NCBI RefSeq assembly: GCF_000315625.1
Contig: NW_005434644.1
Span: forward strand, 440,973-504,972
Direction of reading: 5' to 3'
DNA length: 64,000 nucleotides
Origin: Guillardia theta CCMP2712
Lineage: Eukaryota > Protista > Cryptophyta
Position 1 is the first letter of the stretch. Every line of letters begins with the position of its first letter. Positions 36,378 through 55,911 of the stretch are shown here, in pieces. The position numbers and the translations under genes were made by a program. The notes beneath the pieces were generated by a model, which worked only from the letters and a program-made list of their open reading frames with translations, was not told where the DNA came from and searched no databases.

Positions 36378-38500
36378 TCACTCCCCCATGATGTTCCTGA
36401 ACGAGATATACCGCGCGTGCCCTCTCTCGCTCCTCAACAGGTAGAAGCTTCTCAGCACCATCTGCAGCTCGCAGATGTGCCAGTCCGTGTCCTCTCTCCT
36501 GGTCTCCTCCGAGGCTATCCTCAGATTCAGGGCGACATGCCTGTATCCTCCGCTCCTCACCGAGTCTGCCGTGGGGTCCAGGTTGTTCTTGATCCTCTCC
36601 ACCACCACGTCCGGGTCCTGCAGGATCGCCCGCAAACACTTCGTGAGGTCGGAGACCGAGTCGAAGATGATGCACTGCCTGCAGACGTCCAGCAGGCAGG
36701 AAACGTCTCCCCCGTAGCACCTCATCACCTTCTCCACACATCGCTGGATCGACTTCACGTGCGCCCACACGTAGTCGTTCACACCACTCCCTTCCACGTA
36801 CGGGCCGATGTCGTCGTCATCCTCGGGAAACCACGAGCTGGCCGCGGCCTTGTGCCGTAGCAGCCCCTTGCTCGACGACACCCAGCCCAGCGTCTTTCTC
36901 CTCAGATGGGTGTCGAGCTTCATCGCCTGCTCATACAGGTATGTGAGGCTTGTGACAGGCCGTCCTCGCTTGTCCAGTTGCCTCCACTCCGGGCTTCGCG
37001 ATCTCTTCATCAAGAGATTCCCCAGTTGCCAGAACATGGGCAGCTCAGCATCTGCTTCTACCGCCGGAACATGCTTGCTTGCGAAAGGAGCCGCTATTTG
37101 CTTCAGCTCAATGAAGGAGTCCTTCCCTGACTCCTTGATAGTTTTGGACCAGATCAGATCGTACTTGTTCTTGTCGAGCTCGATGACACGGTGAGCCGAC
37201 CTGGTTGTCAGCAGCCGGAACGTTTTCACCACGATAGCGAAGAAGAGCATCGGCAACCCAAGGTAGAAGCAGACGGAGGAGAAGCTATACGGCCCGAAGG
37301 TGACGAACGGGTACATGGCAAGGCCTGTCAGCAGCACATGGATGCCTCCCCATGCAATGCTGTTGCTCAGCTCGTCCGTCCAGATGAAGTAGAAGTGCAC
37401 GACGTCGATGAAGGCCAGCGCAAGAGCCCGGGCACGCGAATAGCTGCCTTCGTGTGAGACGGCCAAGGTTGCCTCCAAGATGTGGATGAGGAAAGAGACC
37501 GGGTGCATGATCCGAATAAGCTTCTGGCCGACAAACTTCTTGTCGATGACACCGCAGAGCCCGGCCCCAAAGAGGATGAACCCGCAGAAGACCTTGGCGA
37601 ACTGGTCGAAGTAGTAGCCGGCGTCCGGCTGGAAGACTTGGAAGACCTCGACCTCCCCTCGTCCTGTTGTGGTCTTGTAGATTCCGTCCAAAAAGATGAC
37701 AAATCCTGCAAGGATGGGTGAGATGACCGACTACAGCGCTCTACAGCGCTCCAGGCTCGTGCTTCACCTGAGCAGCTCAGATAGGAGGACGACCCTGCCT
37801 GGTGCCATTGGCCGTCATGCCAGAACCAGAACTGCCAGCAGAGTCAGTCAGAAGAGACGCAGAAAAGAGTGAAGAAGGGAGGGGGGGACCTGGAATCGGA
37901 CTGGATCGTGATCTGCACTTTCGTTCCATGCAGTGCGGAAAAACCACGCATCCCATCTAACTTCGTGGCTGAGAGAGATTGTGTACTCGCTCCTTTCAAT
38001 CGTTTGGCTCTTCACATCAGCTCCCTGCTGCTCGATGCCTGCCAGACCATGCAAGACGCCCAGTTGCGATATACTGACCGCAGCGGGTCTTGCCAAGGGG
38101 TTGCGCTTGCTGAGTTCGACTAGTTTAAACCTCGCAGACATGGGAGGTTGCCGAGTGGACCAGCAGACGATGAAGTCCTCGAATATGGCATAGAAGCCGA
38201 TCAGCATGAGGAATAGCTGCATGCTCCTCAGCGTAAGGGCAGAGGCGATTGGGTTGGAGCAGCAGAAGACACTCCCGAAGGGGACGTGCCGCATCGCCGT
38301 CTTGAGGTACTCATCTGGCGTGATTGTGTTCCTGCGCCTGCCACGGTCCTTCTCAACGCAATTGTGCATGAATTTGCGCGTGAACGTCAAGTCAGTGATG
38401 AACCTCAAGATACCGACGCAAGAAGTGACAGACTGGATCTGTGCCATTTTCCTGTTCATCTGGAGACCGAGGTACCCTTCGAGAATTCCCAGGAATCTGT
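36378..38500 (-). CDS. Multi-pass membrane protein with one C-terminal RelA/SpoT-like nucleotidyltransferase domain (single-module paralog)
   Basis: ORFs 37848..38459 and 36378..37691 joined through a small exon at ~37770-37833. Several hydrophobic helices. C-terminus VKSIQRCVEK..LLDVCRQCI..RIKNNL..GGYRH..CELQ..GHARY. Start codon uncertain. Confidence 0.8.
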
Positions 38501-46659: not shown

Positions 46660-49600
46660 TCACTCACATCTCAGGTTCCTATACGCTACATACCTCTTGT
46701 GCCCCTCCGTCGTCCTTAGATCCATAAACCCCTTCACCAGAAGCTGCAGCTCGCACACATGCCCCGCTACCCCCAGCTCCCTCGTCCTCTCCGTCACCAC
46801 CCGTAGGTTCACCGCCACGTCTCGGTACCCCCCCGTCGTCCGCGCGTCGAAGCTCGGGTCCAGCCTGTTCTTGATCCTCATCACCACGATCTCGGGGTCT
46901 CCCAGGATCCGCTCCAGACACTCGCACAGGTCCTCGAGCTGCTCGAAGACGATGCACTGCCGCACCACGTCCAGCAGCCTCGACACGTCGTTGTTGTAGG
47001 ATCGCACGAGCTTCTCCACCGCCCGGTCCACGCTCTTCATCGGCGCCCATCGGATCCGCTGCTGAAGCTCCTCGTCCTCCTTTGCCTCCCTCCACCCGAT
47101 ACACTCCACCAACCCTTCGCTACCTGAAGGCAGAGCCGGGAACAAGCCCCTCGACTCCTCCGCAAGCTCTTGTACCTTCTTCCGGAAGATCGGGTCGGCA
47201 AACACCGCCTGCGCGTACAGCTGGTCTAGCGACACCACCCGCGGGTCCTTGCTCAGCGGCCACACGCTCTTGCTCGGCACACGCAGGGAGAAGGAGCCGC
47301 CCTGGCTCTTCCTCAGCATCCACTCCAGCGGGCTCGACGACTCCTCTAGCGGGCTGTCGGGGTCATGCACGCGGCTCTGAGCCAGCCTGGTCGGGACTTG
47401 GACCTGCGAGACCAGCTGGCCGATGCGCTCCAGGGTCAGGCGACTGGTTTGAGAGGAAGAGAGAGACTCCCAGAGGTCGTTGTACTTGAGAAGCTCCGAC
47501 TTGACGTTCTTGAAGGCTCTGTGCAGGTGGAGTTTTCTGCCTATAGTGAAGTACAACCACATCGCTATCAGGGGGAAGTTGCTCCATCCAAGATTCGATA
47601 TGTCCGGAACACGCTTGTATCCATGGGTGACGAGGCTTGAAACCCCGACCGAGGTGAAGATGCTGTAGAACGGCAGGACTGTCATCATGTACTGCTCTCG
47701 AAACTCGATGACCATCCCGAAAGAAAGGTCCCCAATGCCCCATATCAAGCCGCTCCCCGTAGTCTCGTTGCCTACCGCGAAGAAGAAGATTTCAAACACT
47801 CCGACCACGTGAAACAAGGACGCGAACATCGTCTTCGGTACCCGTCGATACCCTAGCCTTGCCGTCACTACCGCCAAGATACATACAAGAGGCTGAATTA
47901 TCGAGATCAAAATCGCAAGGATGCGAAACACTAGATATTGTACGTTGAAGTACATCCGTGCCCCCCTGTACGCCTCGCCTTCCTTGCACACTCCCATCCC
48001 CGGCCTCTCTCTGCACGAGAAGCTCGTCCAGTCCTTCCACGCCTTCCCCGACACACTCTCTACTTCCTCCCCGCTCCCCACCGGCCGCTCCAGTATCGAG
48101 AGGTTGAAGGCGATCGGGTCGTAGCCCGCCAGCTGCTTGTCAGGGTTGAGGCTGAAGTGCCAGCCGTTGGCCTCCGCCGGCGGAGCGAAGAAGAAGTAGA
48201 GCGTGTTGTTCACCGTCTTGGTGGACGCCGGGGATCGCTGGTTGCAGCTGTCAAGCATGAGAGAGAAGTTGGAGACGGAGGCGCTGGGAATGGAGGCGCG
48301 AGGAGCTTGATCGCGGTATTCTTGTATGTGCAATCTTGCGACGTAAACTGAAGTAGCTTTGTTCTCGAGGAATCCACTGACATTGAGGGATGCGACGTAC
48401 ATGTAAGTGAGAAAGCCCGCGACGGCAAGAAGAACGACCTGCGTTGTCACCTTTTGTAACGTATTTTTGACAGGGTTGGAGGAGAAGATGACGCTCGAGG
48501 TCATGGTATTCTGTATCCCAGTAACGATGTTTCGTAGCTTCTCGTCCATGATACCCCCCGGGTACTTGCCCTTGTACTTCATGAAAGAGCTCTGTGGACA
48601 ATCATCACACTGCTCAAATGTCTGCATCCTTCCCTGTGCTCGGCTCAACCCTTCTTGGGTCGATTCAATTGACTCCGAAACTTGGCTCATGCTGACTTGG
48701 ATGGAAACGTTTTCAACCTTGGAGCAAACCTTTTCTTTGCTCCACCATGCCCTCTCGTACCTCAGTACCTGCTTCACCCCTCGGTACCGCAGCCGCCGCT
48801 CCCGTGTCGATAGCACATGCATCCCCATCACCCCCAGCCGCAGCTCGCACACATGCCCCGCTACCCCCAGCTCCCTCGTCCTCTCCGTCACCACCCGTAG
48901 GTTCACCGCCACGTCTCGGTACCCCCCCGTCGTCCGCGCGTCGAAGCTCGGGTCCAGCCTGTTCTTGATCCTCATCACCACGATCTCGGGGTCTCCCAGG
49001 ATCCGCTCCAGACACTCGCACAGGTCCTCGAGCCGCTCGAAGACGATGCACTGCCGCACCACGTCCAGCAGCCTCGACGTCTGCCCATCGCACAGGCGGA
49101 GGATCTTGTCGATGGCGCGGTCGACGTTCTTGATTCTAGGCCATTCCACGTGTCTCATCAAGATCACGTCCCCCCGGATGTCCTCCAGCCGCACGTACTC
49201 TCTCTTGTCATCCGCGCTCAGCCGTAGCGGGATCATCCCCTTGGCCTCCGCCGCAAGCCCCAGCGCCTTCTCCCTGAAGATGGGCTCTATCAGCACCGCG
49301 TGCGCGTACAGCTGGTCCAGGCTGTTGACCGGCCCCGCGGCCGATCGCTGCTCTACGACAAACGTCCCCTTTTGTACCGTCTCTGTGAGGCTTCGACCAC
49401 TCCCGTAGAGCGTGTGCAGCTGCCTCAGGCTCGACCTCGCCTCAGCGTCTTCTGCCGTCTCGTCGTCTGCCCTCGCCACGCGCTCGGCCATCGTACTTGT
49501 ATACTCCCTCACTTGCTTCGACAGGTGCTGGATCGCCTCCTTGCTCCTGTCTGCCAGCCCTTCCCACTCCCTACAAAACGCCGCCCGATCCCCCGCGATC

Positions 49601-50563
49601 ATCCGCTCCCCCCGGTACACCAGCGCCCGTCGCAGCATCAAGACCATGCTCAGCACGATGATCACGATGATGCTCTGATACGACACCAACCACGCCCCTG
49701 CTGCACACGCGTACACCACGTTCGAGAGCAGCCCCAGCTCGATCGCCGACGACTCGCTGTACAGGAGCGGCCCGGGGAACAGAAGCACGTCCTGCCCAGC
49801 ACCCCCGTCAGTCCCCCTCAGCCGCCTAGAGCTCGTCGCTCCCCGCCCTCCCGTACCTTGACCGCGACGAGCAGAAACAGAAACGAAGGTGTCCCAAGCA
49901 TCGTCTTGTGGTAATCGCCCCGTACCTCCAGCCGAAGGAATATCAGCATGTTGCAGGCCGCGTCGAGCGCTCCGAAGAAAACAAAGATCTGGAGCCCCCC
50001 CAAGCCTCATGTCAGCTCCATGCTCCACCCCGACCTCCCGCCTGACTCACCTTGTTCACCCACTGCACTCTGTCCAAGGCTGCTCCGATCCCCGCCATCA
50101 GCAGAGCAAGCGGAGGGAAGAACCAGCTCAGCAGCTCCAGACGCGCATCCCAGCCGCACGACACGTTGCTGGGTATCGCGCGCGGCTCTAGGATGACATG
50201 CATCGAGCTGATTGATGGGAAGAAGAAGTCTTGCTGCCGGAGAGCTGCGACCTCGTATATCCTCACCACCAGCCAAGGCACGGCCACGAGCAGAGCGATG
50301 AGCTGACCGGCTCTCGAGGTCATGAAGGAAGTGATGGGCTCCCATGAGAAGACAGACAGGAGGGGATCGTGACGGTAGACGTGCCTGTCCTTCAAGGCAA
50401 GGTCCATGAAGTTACCGGGCTGCTGCGTGTAGTTGCGCACAAAAGCATCCAGAAAAGACGCGTGATTGACCTCGATGATGGTCGAAAGTGCAATTTCAGT
50501 CCTTGCATCCACGGGCGACGCCGTTTCAATATCATCATTCTGACTTGTGTTGCTCATGGTCAT
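46660..50563 (-). CDS. Multi-pass membrane protein with two RelA/SpoT-like domains, copy 1 (exons 50563-50051, 49988-49857, 49791-46660)
   Basis: GT-AG introns give an in-frame join WVNK/IFVFFG..VAVK/DVLLFP. Two K..R...K / LLDVVR / RIKNR / GGYRD / CEL domains, each preceded by TM helices. Confidence 0.85.
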
Positions 50564-51827: not shown

Positions 51828-54800
51828 ATGTCAGCAAGTGTCATAGCTGGCGAGAGGGAGCATGGTTGCAGACAACTTGATCCGATCTCACATGAGCATA
51901 ACGACCTTCGTATGACCCAGGATCCAGAAAGGCTCGAGCCCCTGAATGAATCAGGCTGCGACCTTTCAATCGAAATCGCGGACAGGTTTGAAAGCGAAAC
52001 GTCCTCTCACGATGATTTCATCGAGAGATCTGGCACTAGAGACTACAACTTCATATTCTCATTGCTACCAGGCTCGACAGGAGAAGATTCTTTCAGTTGG
52101 AGACGAACCTATGCTTACACATACACGCAGCAGCCCGGTAACTTCATGGACCTTGCTTGGAGGGACAGGCACGTCTACCGACACGATCCCCTCCTGTCTG
52201 TCTTCTCATGGGAGCCTATCACTTCCTTCATGACCTCGAGAGCCGGTCAGCTCATCGCTCTGCTCGTGGCCGTGCCTTGGCTGGTGGTGAGGATATACGA
52301 GGTCGCAGCTCTCCGGCAGCAAGACTTCTTCTTCCCATCAATCAGCTCGATGCATGTCATCCTAGAGCCGCGCGCGATACCCAGCAACGTGTCGTGCGGC
52401 TGGGATGCGCGTCTGGAGCTGCTGAGCTGGTTCTTCCCTCCGCTTGCTCTGCTGATGGCGGGGATCGGAGCAGCCTTGGACAGAGTGCAGTGGGTGAACA
52501 AGGTGAGTCAGGCGGGAGGTCGGGGTGGAGCATGGAGCTGACATGAGGCTTGGGGGGGCTCCAGATCTTTGTCTTCTTCGGAGCGCTCGACGCGGCCTGC
52601 AACATGCTGATATTCCTTCGGCTGGAGGTACGGGGCGATTACCACAAGACGATGCTTGGGACACCTTCGTTTCTGTTTCTGCTCGTCGCGGTCAAGGTAC
52701 GGGAGGGCGGGGAGCGACGAGCTCCAGGCGGCTGAGGGGGACTGACGGGGGTGCTGGGCAGGACGTGCTTCTGTTCCCCGGGCCGCTCCTGTACAGCGAG
52801 TCGTCGGCGATCGAGCTGGGGCTGCTCTCGAACGTGGTGTACGCGTGTGCAGCAGGGGCGTGGTTGGTGTCGTATCAGAGCATCATCGTGATCATCGTGC
52901 TGAGCATGGTCTTGATGCTGCGACGGGCGCTGGTGTACCGGGGGGAGCGGATGATCGCGGGGGATCGGGCGGCGTTTTGTAGGGAGTGGGAAGGGCTGGC
53001 AGACAGGAGCAAGGAGGCGATCCAGCACCTGTCGAAGCAAGTCAGGGAGTATGCAAGTACGATGGCCGAGCGCGTGGCGAGGGCAGACGACGAGACGGCA
53101 GGAGACGCTGAGGCGAGGTCGAGCCTGAGGCAGCTGCACACGCTCTACGGGAGCGGTCGAAGCCTCACAGAGACGGTACAAAAGGGGACGTTTGTTGTAG
53201 AGCAGCGATCGGCCGCGGGGCCGGTCAACAGCCTGGACCAGCTGTACGCTCACGCGGTGCTGATAGAGCCCATCTTCAGGGAGAAGGCGCTGGGGCTTGC
53301 GGCGGAGGCCAAGGGGATGATCCCGCTACGGCTGAGCGCGGATGACAAGAGAGAGTACGTGCGGCTGGAGGACATCCGGGGGGACGTGAGCTTGATGAGG
53401 CACGTGGAATGGCCTAGAATCAAGAACGTCGACCGCGCCATCGACAAGATCCTCCGCCTGTGCGATGGGCAGACGTCGAGGCTGCTGGACGTGGTGCGGC
53501 AGTGCATCGTCTTCGAGCGGCTCGAGGACCTGTGCGAGTGTCTGGAGCGGATCCTGGGAGACCCCGAGATCGTGGTGATGAGGATCAAGAACAGGCTGGA
53601 CCCGAGCTTCGACGCGCGGACGACGGGAGGGTACCGAGACGTGGCGGTGAACCTACGGGTGGTGACGGAGAGGACGAGGGAGCTGGGGGTAGCGGGGCAC
53701 GTTTGCGAGCTGCGGCTGGGGGTGATGGGGATGCATGTGCTATCGACACGGGAGCGGCGGCTGCGGTACCGAGGGGTGAAGCAGGTACTGAGGTACGAGA
53801 GGGCATGGTTGGCAAAGCGTGGTACTTGGTCAATGTCGGAGCTGGTAGAGGAAACGAAACTTTCATCAATCCAAGTCAGCATGAGCCAAGTGTCTGCGTC
53901 GTTTGTTTGGAGTCAAGAGGGAATAACGCAGTCCGAAGCGATAATACAGATGTATGAAGCTTCCACTGAATGCCCACAGAGCTCTTTCATGAAGTACAAG
54001 GGCAAGTACCCGGGGGGTATCATGGACGAGAAGCTACGAAACATCGTCACCGGGATACAGAATACCATGACCTCGAGCGTCATCTTCTCCTCCAACCCTG
54101 TCAAAAATACGTTACAAAAGGTGACAACGCAGGTCGTTCTTCTTGCCGTCGCGGGCTTTCTCACTTACATGTACGTCGCATCCCTCAATGTCAGTGGATT
54201 CCTCGAGAACAAAGCTACTTCAGTTTACGTCGCAAGATTGCACATACAAGAATACCGCGATCAAGCTCCTCGCGCCTCCGTTCCCAGCGCCTCCGTCTCC
54301 AACTTCTCTCTCATGCTTGACAGCTGCAACCAGCGATCTCCGGCGTCCACCAAGACGGTGAACAACACGCTCTACTTCTTCTTCGCTCCGCCGGCGGAGG
54401 CCAACGGCTGGCACTTCAGCCTCAACCCTGACAAGCAGCTGGCGAGCTACGACCCGATCGCCTTCAACCTCTCGATACTGGAGCGGCCGGTGGGGAGCGG
54501 GGAGGAAGTAGAGAGTGTGTCGGGGAAGGCGTGGAAGGACTGGACGAGCTTCTCGTGCAGAGAGAGGCCGGGGATGGGAGTGTGCAAGGAGGGCGAGGCG
54601 TACAGGGGGGCTCGGATGTACTTCAACGTACAATATCTAGTGTTTCGCATCCTTGCGATTTTGATCTCGATAATTCAGCCTCTTGTATGTATCTTGGCGG
54701 TAGTGACGGCAAGGCTAGGGTATCGACGGGTACCGAAGACGATGTTCGCGTCCTTGTTTCACGTGGTCGGAGTGTTTGAAATCTTCTTCTTTGCGGTAGG

Positions 54801-55911
54801 CAACGAGACTACGGGGAGCGGCTTGATATGGGGCATTGGGGACCTTTCTTTCGGGATGGTCATCGAGTTTCGAGAGCAGTACATGATGACAGTCTTGCCG
54901 TTCTACAGCATCTTCACCTCGGTCGGGGTTTCAAGCCTCGTCACCCATGGATACAAGCGTGTTCCGGACATATCCAATCTTGGATGGAGCAACTTCCCCC
55001 TGATAGCGATGTGGTTGTACTTCACTATAGGCAGAAAACTCCACCTGCACAGAGCCTTCAAGAACGTCAAGTCGGAGCTTCTCAAGTACAACGACCTCTG
55101 GGAGTCTCTCTCTTCCTCTCAAAACAGCCGCCTGACCCTGGAGCGCATCGGCCAGCTGGTCTCGCAGGTCCAAGTGCCGACCAGGCTGGCTCAGAGCCGC
55201 GTGCATGACCCCGACAGCCCGCTAGAGGAGTCGTCGAGCCCGCTGGAGTGGATGCTGAGGAGGAGCCAGGGCGGGTCCTCCTCGCTGCGTGTGCCGAGCA
55301 AGAGTGTGTGGCCGCTGAGCAAGGACCCGCGGGTGGTGTCGCTAGACCAGCTGTACGCGCAGGCGGTGTTTGCCGACCCGATCTTCCGGAAGAAGGTACA
55401 GGAGCTGGCGGAGGAGTCGAGGGGCTTGTTCCCGGCTCTGCCTTCAGGTAGCGAAGAGTCGGTGGAGTGTATCGGGTGGAGGGAGGCAAAGGAGGACGAG
55501 GAGCTTCAGCAGCGGATCCGATGGGCGCCGATGAAGAGCGTGGACCGGGCGGTGGAGAAGCTCGTGCGATCCTACAACAACGACGTGTCGAGGCTGCTGG
55601 ACGTGGTGCGGCAGTGCATCGTCTTCGAGCGGCTCGAGGACCTGTGCGAGTGTCTGGAGCGGATCCTGGGAGACCCCGAGATCGTGGTGATGAGGATCAA
55701 GAACAGGCTGGACCCGAGCTTCGACGCGCGGACGACGGGGGGGTACAGGGACGTACTTGTGAATCTACGGGTGGTGACGGAGAGGACGAGGGAGCTGGGG
55801 GTAGCGGGGCACGTGTGCGAGCTGCAGCTTCTGGTGAAGGGGTTTATGGATCTAAGGACGACGGAGGGGCACAAGAGGTATGTAGCGTATAGGAACCTGA
55901 GATGTGAGTAG
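51828..55911 (+). CDS. Multi-pass membrane protein with two RelA/SpoT-like domains, copy 2 (exons ~51828-52502, 52565-52696, 52762-55911)
   Basis: Near-identical inverted paralog of copy 1 with the same two introns. Confidence 0.85.

Follow-up and report, generated by a model that had tools for sequence, protein, structure and literature searches.

Alarmone synthetases are known as stress enzymes of bacteria and plastids and as bacterial toxins, and a nuclear gene of Guillardia theta CCMP2712 raises the question of what two such domains might do when they are carried within one eukaryotic membrane protein. The gene occupies positions 51828-55911 on the plus strand of a 64,000-nucleotide window (the whole stretch of DNA that was analysed, to which all positions refer), has three exons, and encodes a protein of ~1318 residues composed of two homologous modules. 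Its layout is 6TM-D1-6TM-D2, wherein 6TM is a block of six transmembrane (TM) helices and D1 and D2 are domains predicted to have the fold of the RelA/SpoT homologue (RSH) synthetases. An initial annotation of this DNA had read the gene as TM-SYNTH-TM-SYNTH, with a possibly degenerate first domain that regulates the second. Our analysis leads us to a related reading that we consider probable, though far from secure, in which D2 is the catalytic unit and D1 is an impaired but conserved partner or regulator. In this reading, gene conversion homogenises the core of the two domains, and selection keeps two segments of them apart.

The SYNTH label appears to be correct as a statement on fold, and structural modelling places the domain in the RSH superfamily. 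An AlphaFold2 (AF2) model of D2, computed with 43 homologues as input, has a mean predicted local distance difference test (pLDDT) score of 90.3, and the best 50 Foldseek matches to this model are all RSH synthetases, headed by RelP (6EWZ, E 1e-5). The structural matches include CapRel and FaRel2, and other nucleotidyltransferases score about 7 in the same comparison. D2 also carries the RSH catalytic motif set, which comprises the K/R helix, the Mg Asp/Glu, the acceptor Tyr, E-x-Q and H-x2-Y. Among sequences in the PDB, Tas1 is the sole match, and a marginal one (E 0.39 with a single protein and 0.007 with a family profile), which spans the phosphate-binding helix and the Mg-Asp strand. Alignment with hhalign to the canonical RSH exons of the genome brings D101, E-x-Q and H-x2-Y onto the canonical motifs, and these non-significant matches (E 0.08-0.19) served as consistency checks only. 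What counts against the label is its behaviour in Pfam, where neither the long frame nor exon 1 matches any family at E<=1, and where a PF04607 scan of the genome recovers two canonical RSH genes only. Weak RelA_SpoT matches do occur in 5 of 19 paralog D2 domains (best E 2.4e-4), but membership in PF04607 by its curated cut-off is not reached.

The order of membrane blocks and domains that had been read from the sequence was recovered by AF2 modelling and hydropathy. The exons were analysed separately, and the public protein of a neighbouring inverted paralog (paralog A; GUITHDRAFT_107714, P0042) served as a proxy for whole-protein analyses. Six helices are present in module 2 of the AF2 model of exon 3, and six hydrophobic segments are present in module 1 by hydropathy. 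Since D1 and D2 are separated by an even number of helices, both domains should reside on the same side of the membrane. The predicted layout is thus one in which two six-helix blocks alternate with two homologous cytosolic catalytic-type domains, and within each module a short pre-TM motif in the cytosol would be followed by six membrane helices and then by a cytosolic domain of the RSH pyrophosphokinase fold. The exon 3 model (ma89e1a0595d8, 1049 residues) has a mean pLDDT of 72.7 and a predicted template modelling (pTM) score of 0.46, and at this pTM any contact between D1 and D2 is putative.

The proposal that the long gene arose when an entire TM-plus-synthetase module was duplicated in tandem is upheld by both parts of the module, whose resemblance greatly exceeds what chance would produce. 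D1 and D2 of the 51828-55911 gene are 64% identical (BLASTP E 2e-79), and in an hhalign comparison of profiles made from eight public G. theta proteins, module 1 and module 2 align over 249 columns with a probability of 94% (E 1.1e-7). This alignment takes in the pre-TM motif, all helices and a juxtamembrane F/Y-x3-W helix. The membrane modules are therefore homologous, which indicates that the whole module was duplicated. All of the motifs on which the proposal had been based were located, including SLDQLYA upstream of each catalytic domain (53230 and 55339) and, in a single-module gene of the same window, the pre-TM motif RHVPFGSVFCCSNPI on the minus strand near 38291. Relative to module 1, hhalign shows a beta-rich outside domain of ~150 residues to be an insertion in module 2. 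This outside domain has several N-x-S/T sequons and conserved cysteines; the counterpart loop of module 1 spans only ~40 residues, and its conserved Cys aligns with an outside-domain cysteine.

Whether the two domains are equivalent was assessed by a residue census of 24 of the roughly 30 double-module genes; about six genes with two modules and 15 with one lay outside the comparison. All D2 domains (24/24) have K79, R83, K87, R90, Y92, D101, R104, R132, K134, N135, R136, Y149, R150, D151, N155, E174, G190 and H191, and 23/24 retain Q176. D1, by comparison, retains R90 in 6/24 (lost in 18/24, mostly to L), Y92 in 8/24 (C in 12), Q176 in 4/24 (lost in 20/24, with R in 17 and V in 3), G190 in 1/24 (lost in 23/24) and H191 in 11/24 (lost in 13/24), with various replacements at the last two positions; R198 is K in 19/24. 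In the 51828-55911 gene, D1 has R90, C92, R176, R190, R191 and K198, and the two differences that had originally drawn attention are CELR at 53704 versus CELQ at 55816 in D2, and RRLRY at 53755 versus GHKRY at 55867. The suspicion that D1 is altered is therefore substantiated by systematic differences, which fall at sites that bind donor ATP in solved RSH enzymes. The SaRelP residues that contact the phosphates of ATP are K80, S84, K88 and R91; Mg2+ is held there by D107 and E174, and the ATP ribose is contacted by H190 (PMC5794853). In FaRel2, Q147, located beside E145, contacts the donor adenine (PMC11782079). The D2 spacing K-x3-R-x3-K-x2-R ... D ... E ... H reproduces the SaRelP functional residues, and its E-x-Q matches E145/Q147 of FaRel2.

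Additional losses are evident in D1 domains that carry no converted core. These have lost R132, K134, N155 and Y149, and one of them (L045) has E174R, which indicates that some of the family, at least, can do without catalysis by D1. The suggested check, whether ELR is conserved in D1 across homologues, comes out positive in part: R occupies this position in 17/24 G. theta genes (V in 3 and Q in 4), but ELR is found in only 1/5 metagenomic D1 domains. The other four have ELQ and have nonetheless lost R90, R132, N155 and G190, whereas their D2 partners retain the full residue set.

The similarity between D1 and D2 is not evenly distributed. Within the 51828-55911 gene, 230 of 239 nucleotides of the D1 core are identical to the corresponding stretch of D2, including a perfect run of 153 nucleotides that none of 10000 column shuffles reaches (maximum 46), whereas the aligned flanks are 57% identical. 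This tract ends at the Q/R codon and skips the D1-type ATP-phosphate helix. Codon-by-codon maps reveal the same mosaic in 17/24 genes, with a within-gene identity of 0.95-1.00 over a converted core of ~80 codons, from L-x-D-V-V-R-Q to H-V-C-E-L, and of 0.15-0.48 over the domain-specific segments. Since the same core differs by 30-50% between paralogs, the conversions must have been independent events of recent date. In 16/17 converted genes the Q/R codon is the first that lies beyond the tract, and in the remaining gene (L041, G000:C49:529900-536300) the tract overshoots by 2-3 codons. Many genes carry a second tract over the N-terminal half of the domain, and this tract, with two exceptions, skips ~12 codons that encode E-K-L-V-R-S-Y in D2 and E-K-[IV]-L-L-L-C in D1.

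Conversion also occurs between loci and not only within genes, as evident from synonymous divergence (dS) between the 51828-55911 gene and L032 (G000:C48:3400-9600), which is 0.05-0.11 in the core and 0.6-2.3 in the flanks although the genes reside on different contigs. An assembly artefact as the source of the identical cores was considered and rejected, given that 17 genes, spread over many contigs, show the mosaic, in frame and with the same boundaries every time. A separate locus (L020, G000:C21:37826-38398, minus strand) encodes a single synthetase domain that is an apparent D1/D2 chimera, with a D1-type N-terminal flank and LLLC helix followed by a D2-type tail (CELQ..GHKRY..RCE, stop). 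It looks from this arrangement as if module 2 had been deleted through unequal crossover within the homogenised core.

When only the unconverted segments are compared, the nearest neighbour of a segment is of the same domain type in 46/48 cases and belongs to the same gene in 1/48. A tree was computed from the D1 and D2 domains of unconverted genes and of metagenomic homologues, together with D2 from a selection of converted genes and the domain of the single-module gene in the window. All 18 D2 domains and the single-module domain form one clan, with a Shimodaira-Hasegawa-like approximate likelihood ratio test (SH-aLRT) support of 98, and D1 branches are 2-3 times longer than those of D2. In the D1-only segments, the ratio of nonsynonymous to synonymous divergence (dN/dS) lies mostly between 0.06 and 0.5, reaches 0.74 in one pair and does not rise above 1 in any, although these estimates come from just 14-28 codons and dS is often saturated, which tempers the case for constraint. 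For the D1 tail, the ratio between paralogs is 0.16-0.41 in 8/9 estimable pairs and 0.74 in the ninth, and its dN is 2-6 times that of the D2 tail. Judged by these sequence comparisons, the D1-only segments are under purifying selection, and the split between D1 and D2 is old and maintained. Clustering by domain type, combined with purifying selection, argues for D1 as a maintained, specialised partner. A EukProt sequence of Hanusia phi carries a D1-type tail, the pre-TM motif, module 2 and D2 in a single frame.

We propose that D2, whose nearest, if marginal, sequence match is the (p)ppApp synthetase Tas1, would transfer pyrophosphate from ATP onto a nucleotide-type acceptor. D1, its catalysis impaired, would act as a partner to D2 or regulate it rather than being a second equal enzyme, having lost the helix Arg in most paralogs, exchanged Q for R in the E-x-Q strand and lost G-H in the last helix, which extends into the linker. 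Its inactivity is something that we infer from these residues. Recurrent conversion, intragenic and sometimes inter-locus, homogenises the ~80-codon core, that of D1 being repeatedly replaced by D2 sequence, and the tracts halt at the two D1-specific donor-site segments, where selection, aided by the lack of homology, would keep the domains different. As a more tentative extension, it is possible that the protein is a eukaryotic receptor-type enzyme that follows the plan of a membrane adenylyl cyclase but is assembled from alarmone-synthetase domains, in which the beta-rich domain senses an outside signal, D2 makes a cytosolic (p)ppApp- or (p)ppGpp-like messenger, and D1, as a nucleotide-binding pseudo-enzyme, gates D2, with selection opposing conversion.

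Several observations weigh against this proposal, and some of them would favour two active domains, with D1 serving as a second centre whose different donor or acceptor preference yields two signals, or simply doubles the rate. D1 of the 51828-55911 gene, whose core is 96% identical to D2 at the DNA level, retains K79, R83, K87, R90, D101, R104, Y149 and E174, and thus the Mg ligands, the phosphate-binding K/R residues and the acceptor-site Tyr, which lies in an acceptor loop reading GGYRD; this domain could still bind ATP-Mg, and the Arg that replaces Q176 could still stack on a base. Tas1, which is highly active, has N at the position equivalent to R90, and therefore loss of this Arg need not abolish activity. 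Nor are the domain signatures without exception: the D2 domain of L041 carries CELR, and in L043 (G000:C5:13300-19600) the ATP-phosphate helix has been converted, so that D1 has R90, Y92, Q176 and H191, almost the full D2 motif set by sequence. The distinct D1 tail may partly reflect its continuation into the linker, and the residue equivalences to RelP and FaRel2 derive from the spacing of the motifs, from a partial alignment with Tas1 and from hhalign matches that are not significant, rather than from a residue-level superposition. Furthermore, RSH active sites lie within one domain, unlike the adenylyl cyclase site at the C1-C2 interface, and therefore a shared site of the cyclase kind is not expected. 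Purifying selection on the D1-only segments would likewise suit a second enzyme. We nevertheless regard two active domains as rather doubtful, because D1 has almost universally lost G190 and in 13/24 genes also H191, the counterpart of the ATP-ribose contact in SaRelP, whereas D2 retains both in every gene, and because unconverted D1 domains have lost core invariants that include the catalytic Glu and evolve 2-3 times faster.

A D1 domain devoid of function is a very improbable explanation, in which D1 is a relic of the duplication that resembles D2 through neutral conversion and whose special segments escape conversion through divergence alone. Conversion requires flanking homology, and diverged segments would thus act as barriers even without selection; the elevated dN of the D1 tail fits this idea as well. 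However, dN/dS values below 1 are not those of a relic, the reading frame through D1 is open in 24/24 genes, and the signatures K-[IV]-L-L-L-C-x-G, E-L-R-L-A and K-x-V-L-R-F recur across paralogs that are 30-50% identical and in Hanusia. Different in kind is the suggestion that these proteins are toxin-like effectors that form a receptor-triggered device for cell suicide or defence, with D1 speculatively acting as a built-in brake, rather than producers of a second messenger. CapRel and FaRel2 pyrophosphorylate tRNA, and Tas1 drains ATP. The nearest sequence match, a marginal one, is this last toxin, and the other two are among the structural matches; the family is large and fast-evolving, has variable outside domains and is subject to frequent conversion, and no stand-alone hydrolase family was found in the genome. 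We still judge a toxin role to be unlikely, since the invariant basic residues R132, K134, R136 and R150 by the acceptor loop would better fit the large positive patch of alarmone synthetases than the small one of tRNA-modifying enzymes (PMC11782079). Finally, the locus could hold two separate genes, or an internal promoter that yields a stand-alone module 2-D2 protein, and single-module genes with the module 2 layout do exist, including one in the window. This seems hardly credible when the frame is unbroken from TM5 to the D2 stop in 24/24 genes, public models describe one protein of 1190-1370 amino acids, and the Hanusia phi sequence runs from the D1 tail through D2.

The domain can be placed among known systems with some precision. 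RelQ and RelP (SAS1/SAS2) of Firmicutes share with it, in order, a basic helix K-x3-[RS]-x3-K-x2-R, the Mg-binding Asp strand, a Gly-Tyr acceptor loop, the E-x-Q strand and the H-x2-Y helix. They are only 15-18% identical to the G. theta domain, which stays below Pfam detection, and they have D-x4-R where the G. theta protein has D-x2-R, and an Arg two residues before the first Lys that it lacks. In addition, they form soluble homotetramers, whereas two domains are fused here in a 12-helix eukaryotic membrane protein. Tas1, a (p)ppApp synthetase toxin of the Pseudomonas aeruginosa type VI secretion system (PDB 6OX6), shares A-P-x-K-S-x2-R-A-x2-K-x4-Y and D-x2-R-x2-I, but it is a bacterial toxin domain that is secreted and has an immunity protein, unlike the membrane-anchored, duplicated G. 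theta protein, for which no immunity-like partner was identified, although the neighbouring genes were not screened for one. The canonical long RSH proteins of plastid-bearing eukaryotes, represented in this genome on C47 and C24, have the same superfamily fold and catalytic motifs (EVQIRT, AAHWMYK, DLIAFRI). They differ by passing the Pfam cut-offs and by carrying an HD hydrolase domain, which the membrane-embedded family is without.

Mammalian-type adenylyl cyclases (6TM-C1-6TM-C2) have the same topology, each six-helix block being followed by a cytosolic nucleotide-processing domain, and they share with the G. theta protein an origin by tandem duplication and the degeneration of one domain at catalytic positions. 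As the initial annotation had it, this likeness is one of analogy, not homology: a class III cyclase homology domain is absent, there being no Pfam family at E<=1 and the fold being that of RSH enzymes. The RSH fold is set here in a duplicated membrane architecture that is new for it, and the first of the two domains resembles a pseudo-enzyme. Should D2 prove active, pyrophosphokinase signalling or defence coupled to receptors would exist at the membranes of a eukaryote. Because conversion has erased neutral divergence, the segments that still differ should mark the residues that define the roles of D1 and D2; these are the ATP-phosphate helix and everything past the catalytic Glu, which provide a map for mutagenesis. 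The family is also a clear example of concerted evolution within one protein to which selection sets the limits.

The G. theta genome (87 Mb and 669 contigs as scanned) contains at least 94 copies of the synthetase domain. Public records call the proteins "hypothetical", apart from one UniRef entry with the name "RelA/SpoT domain-containing" and one metagenomic homologue annotated as a ppGpp synthetase. HD_4 hydrolase and RelA_SpoT domains are combined in the genome's two canonical RSH genes (G000:C47:131263-132737 and G000:C24:131220-132315), and no further HD_4 domain was found in the genome, which leaves the membrane family without an obvious expanded hydrolase partner. Our literature searches yielded no account of 12-helix membrane proteins that carry two alarmone-synthetase domains and make up a large nuclear family, and papers on RSH or ppGpp in Guillardia or cryptophytes, as well as RSH surveys, do not mention the membrane family. 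The nearest ESM Atlas neighbour clusters of D2 are unnamed eukaryotic proteins, whose few taxon labels are ciliates and diatoms. One of these clusters is fused to TPR repeats, and bacterial and phage RelA_SpoT clusters come next. The D2-type domain may thus extend among protists beyond the cryptophytes.

Positions of the gene, its domains and conversion tracts, and of related genes in the window
Feature	Positions	Strand	Description
Exon 1	51828..52502	+	Variable N-terminus, pre-TM motif 1, TM1-TM2; GTGAGT donor at 52503
Intron 1	52503..52564	+	62 nucleotides, GT-AG (GTGAGT..CAG)
Exon 2	52565..52696	+	44 codons, phase-0, TM3-TM4
Intron 2	52697..52761	+	65 nucleotides, GT-AG (GTACGG..CAG)
Exon 3	52762..55911	+	1049 codons plus stop; TM5-6, D1, linker, membrane module 2, D2
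Pre-TM motif 1 (RHDPLLSVFSWEPI)	52179..52220	+	Aligns with pre-TM motif 2 (BLASTP E 0.004; hhalign)
Membrane module 1, TM1-6	52245..52920	+	Predicted; both introns inside; outside loop short; hydropathy on paralog A, AF2 helices for TM5-6
D1, first RSH-synthetase-fold domain	53191..53796	+	D1 subtype; AF2 secondary-structure order same as in D2
D1-type ATP-phosphate helix	53443..53463	+	DKILRLC versus EKLVRSY in D2; unconverted in this gene
D1 arm of intragenic conversion tract	53475..53713	+	230/239 nucleotides identical to 55587-55825
D1-type tail (CELR ... RRLRY ...)	53704..53796	+	Runs on into long linker helix
Pre-TM motif 2 (SSVIFSSNPV)	54073..54102	+	Aligned to motif 1 by hhalign
TM7, opening helix of module 2	54130..54186	+	AF2 helix 454-474; hydropathy
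Beta-rich outside domain	54217..54624	+	Exon 3 residues 486-621; AF2 strands, pLDDT about 80-88; module 2 only
TM8-TM12	54634..55059	+	AF2 helices 625-651, 656-679, 685-703, 705-727, 744 onward
D2, second RSH-synthetase-fold domain	55300..55908	+	Full motif set; protein C-terminus RCE
D2 arm of intragenic conversion tract	55587..55825	+	Partner of 53475-53713
Inverted paralog A (GUITHDRAFT_107714, P0042)	46660..50563	-	Same architecture, same D1/D2 mosaic
Single-module relative	36378..38459	-	Pre-TM motif, TM, outside domain, TMs, D2-type synthetase domain

The gene model starts at the earliest in-frame ATG of exon 1 (51828), and one unbroken frame of 1128 codons (52525-55911) spans D1, the linker, membrane block 2 and D2. 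Both exon junctions, VNK|IFVFF and VAVK|DVLLF, are identical in the public model of paralog A (1258 amino acids, "hypothetical protein"). Paralog A and the 51828-55911 gene are 96.97% identical over 3793 nucleotides (46662-50431 versus 52122-55909), and they form head-to-head inverted arms of 3.8 kb and 97% identity that lie ~1.7 kb apart. The arms terminate within exon 1, and therefore the N-terminal 45-100 residues are unrelated between the two genes. Indel differences between the two genes are present in the linker that joins D1 to module 2.

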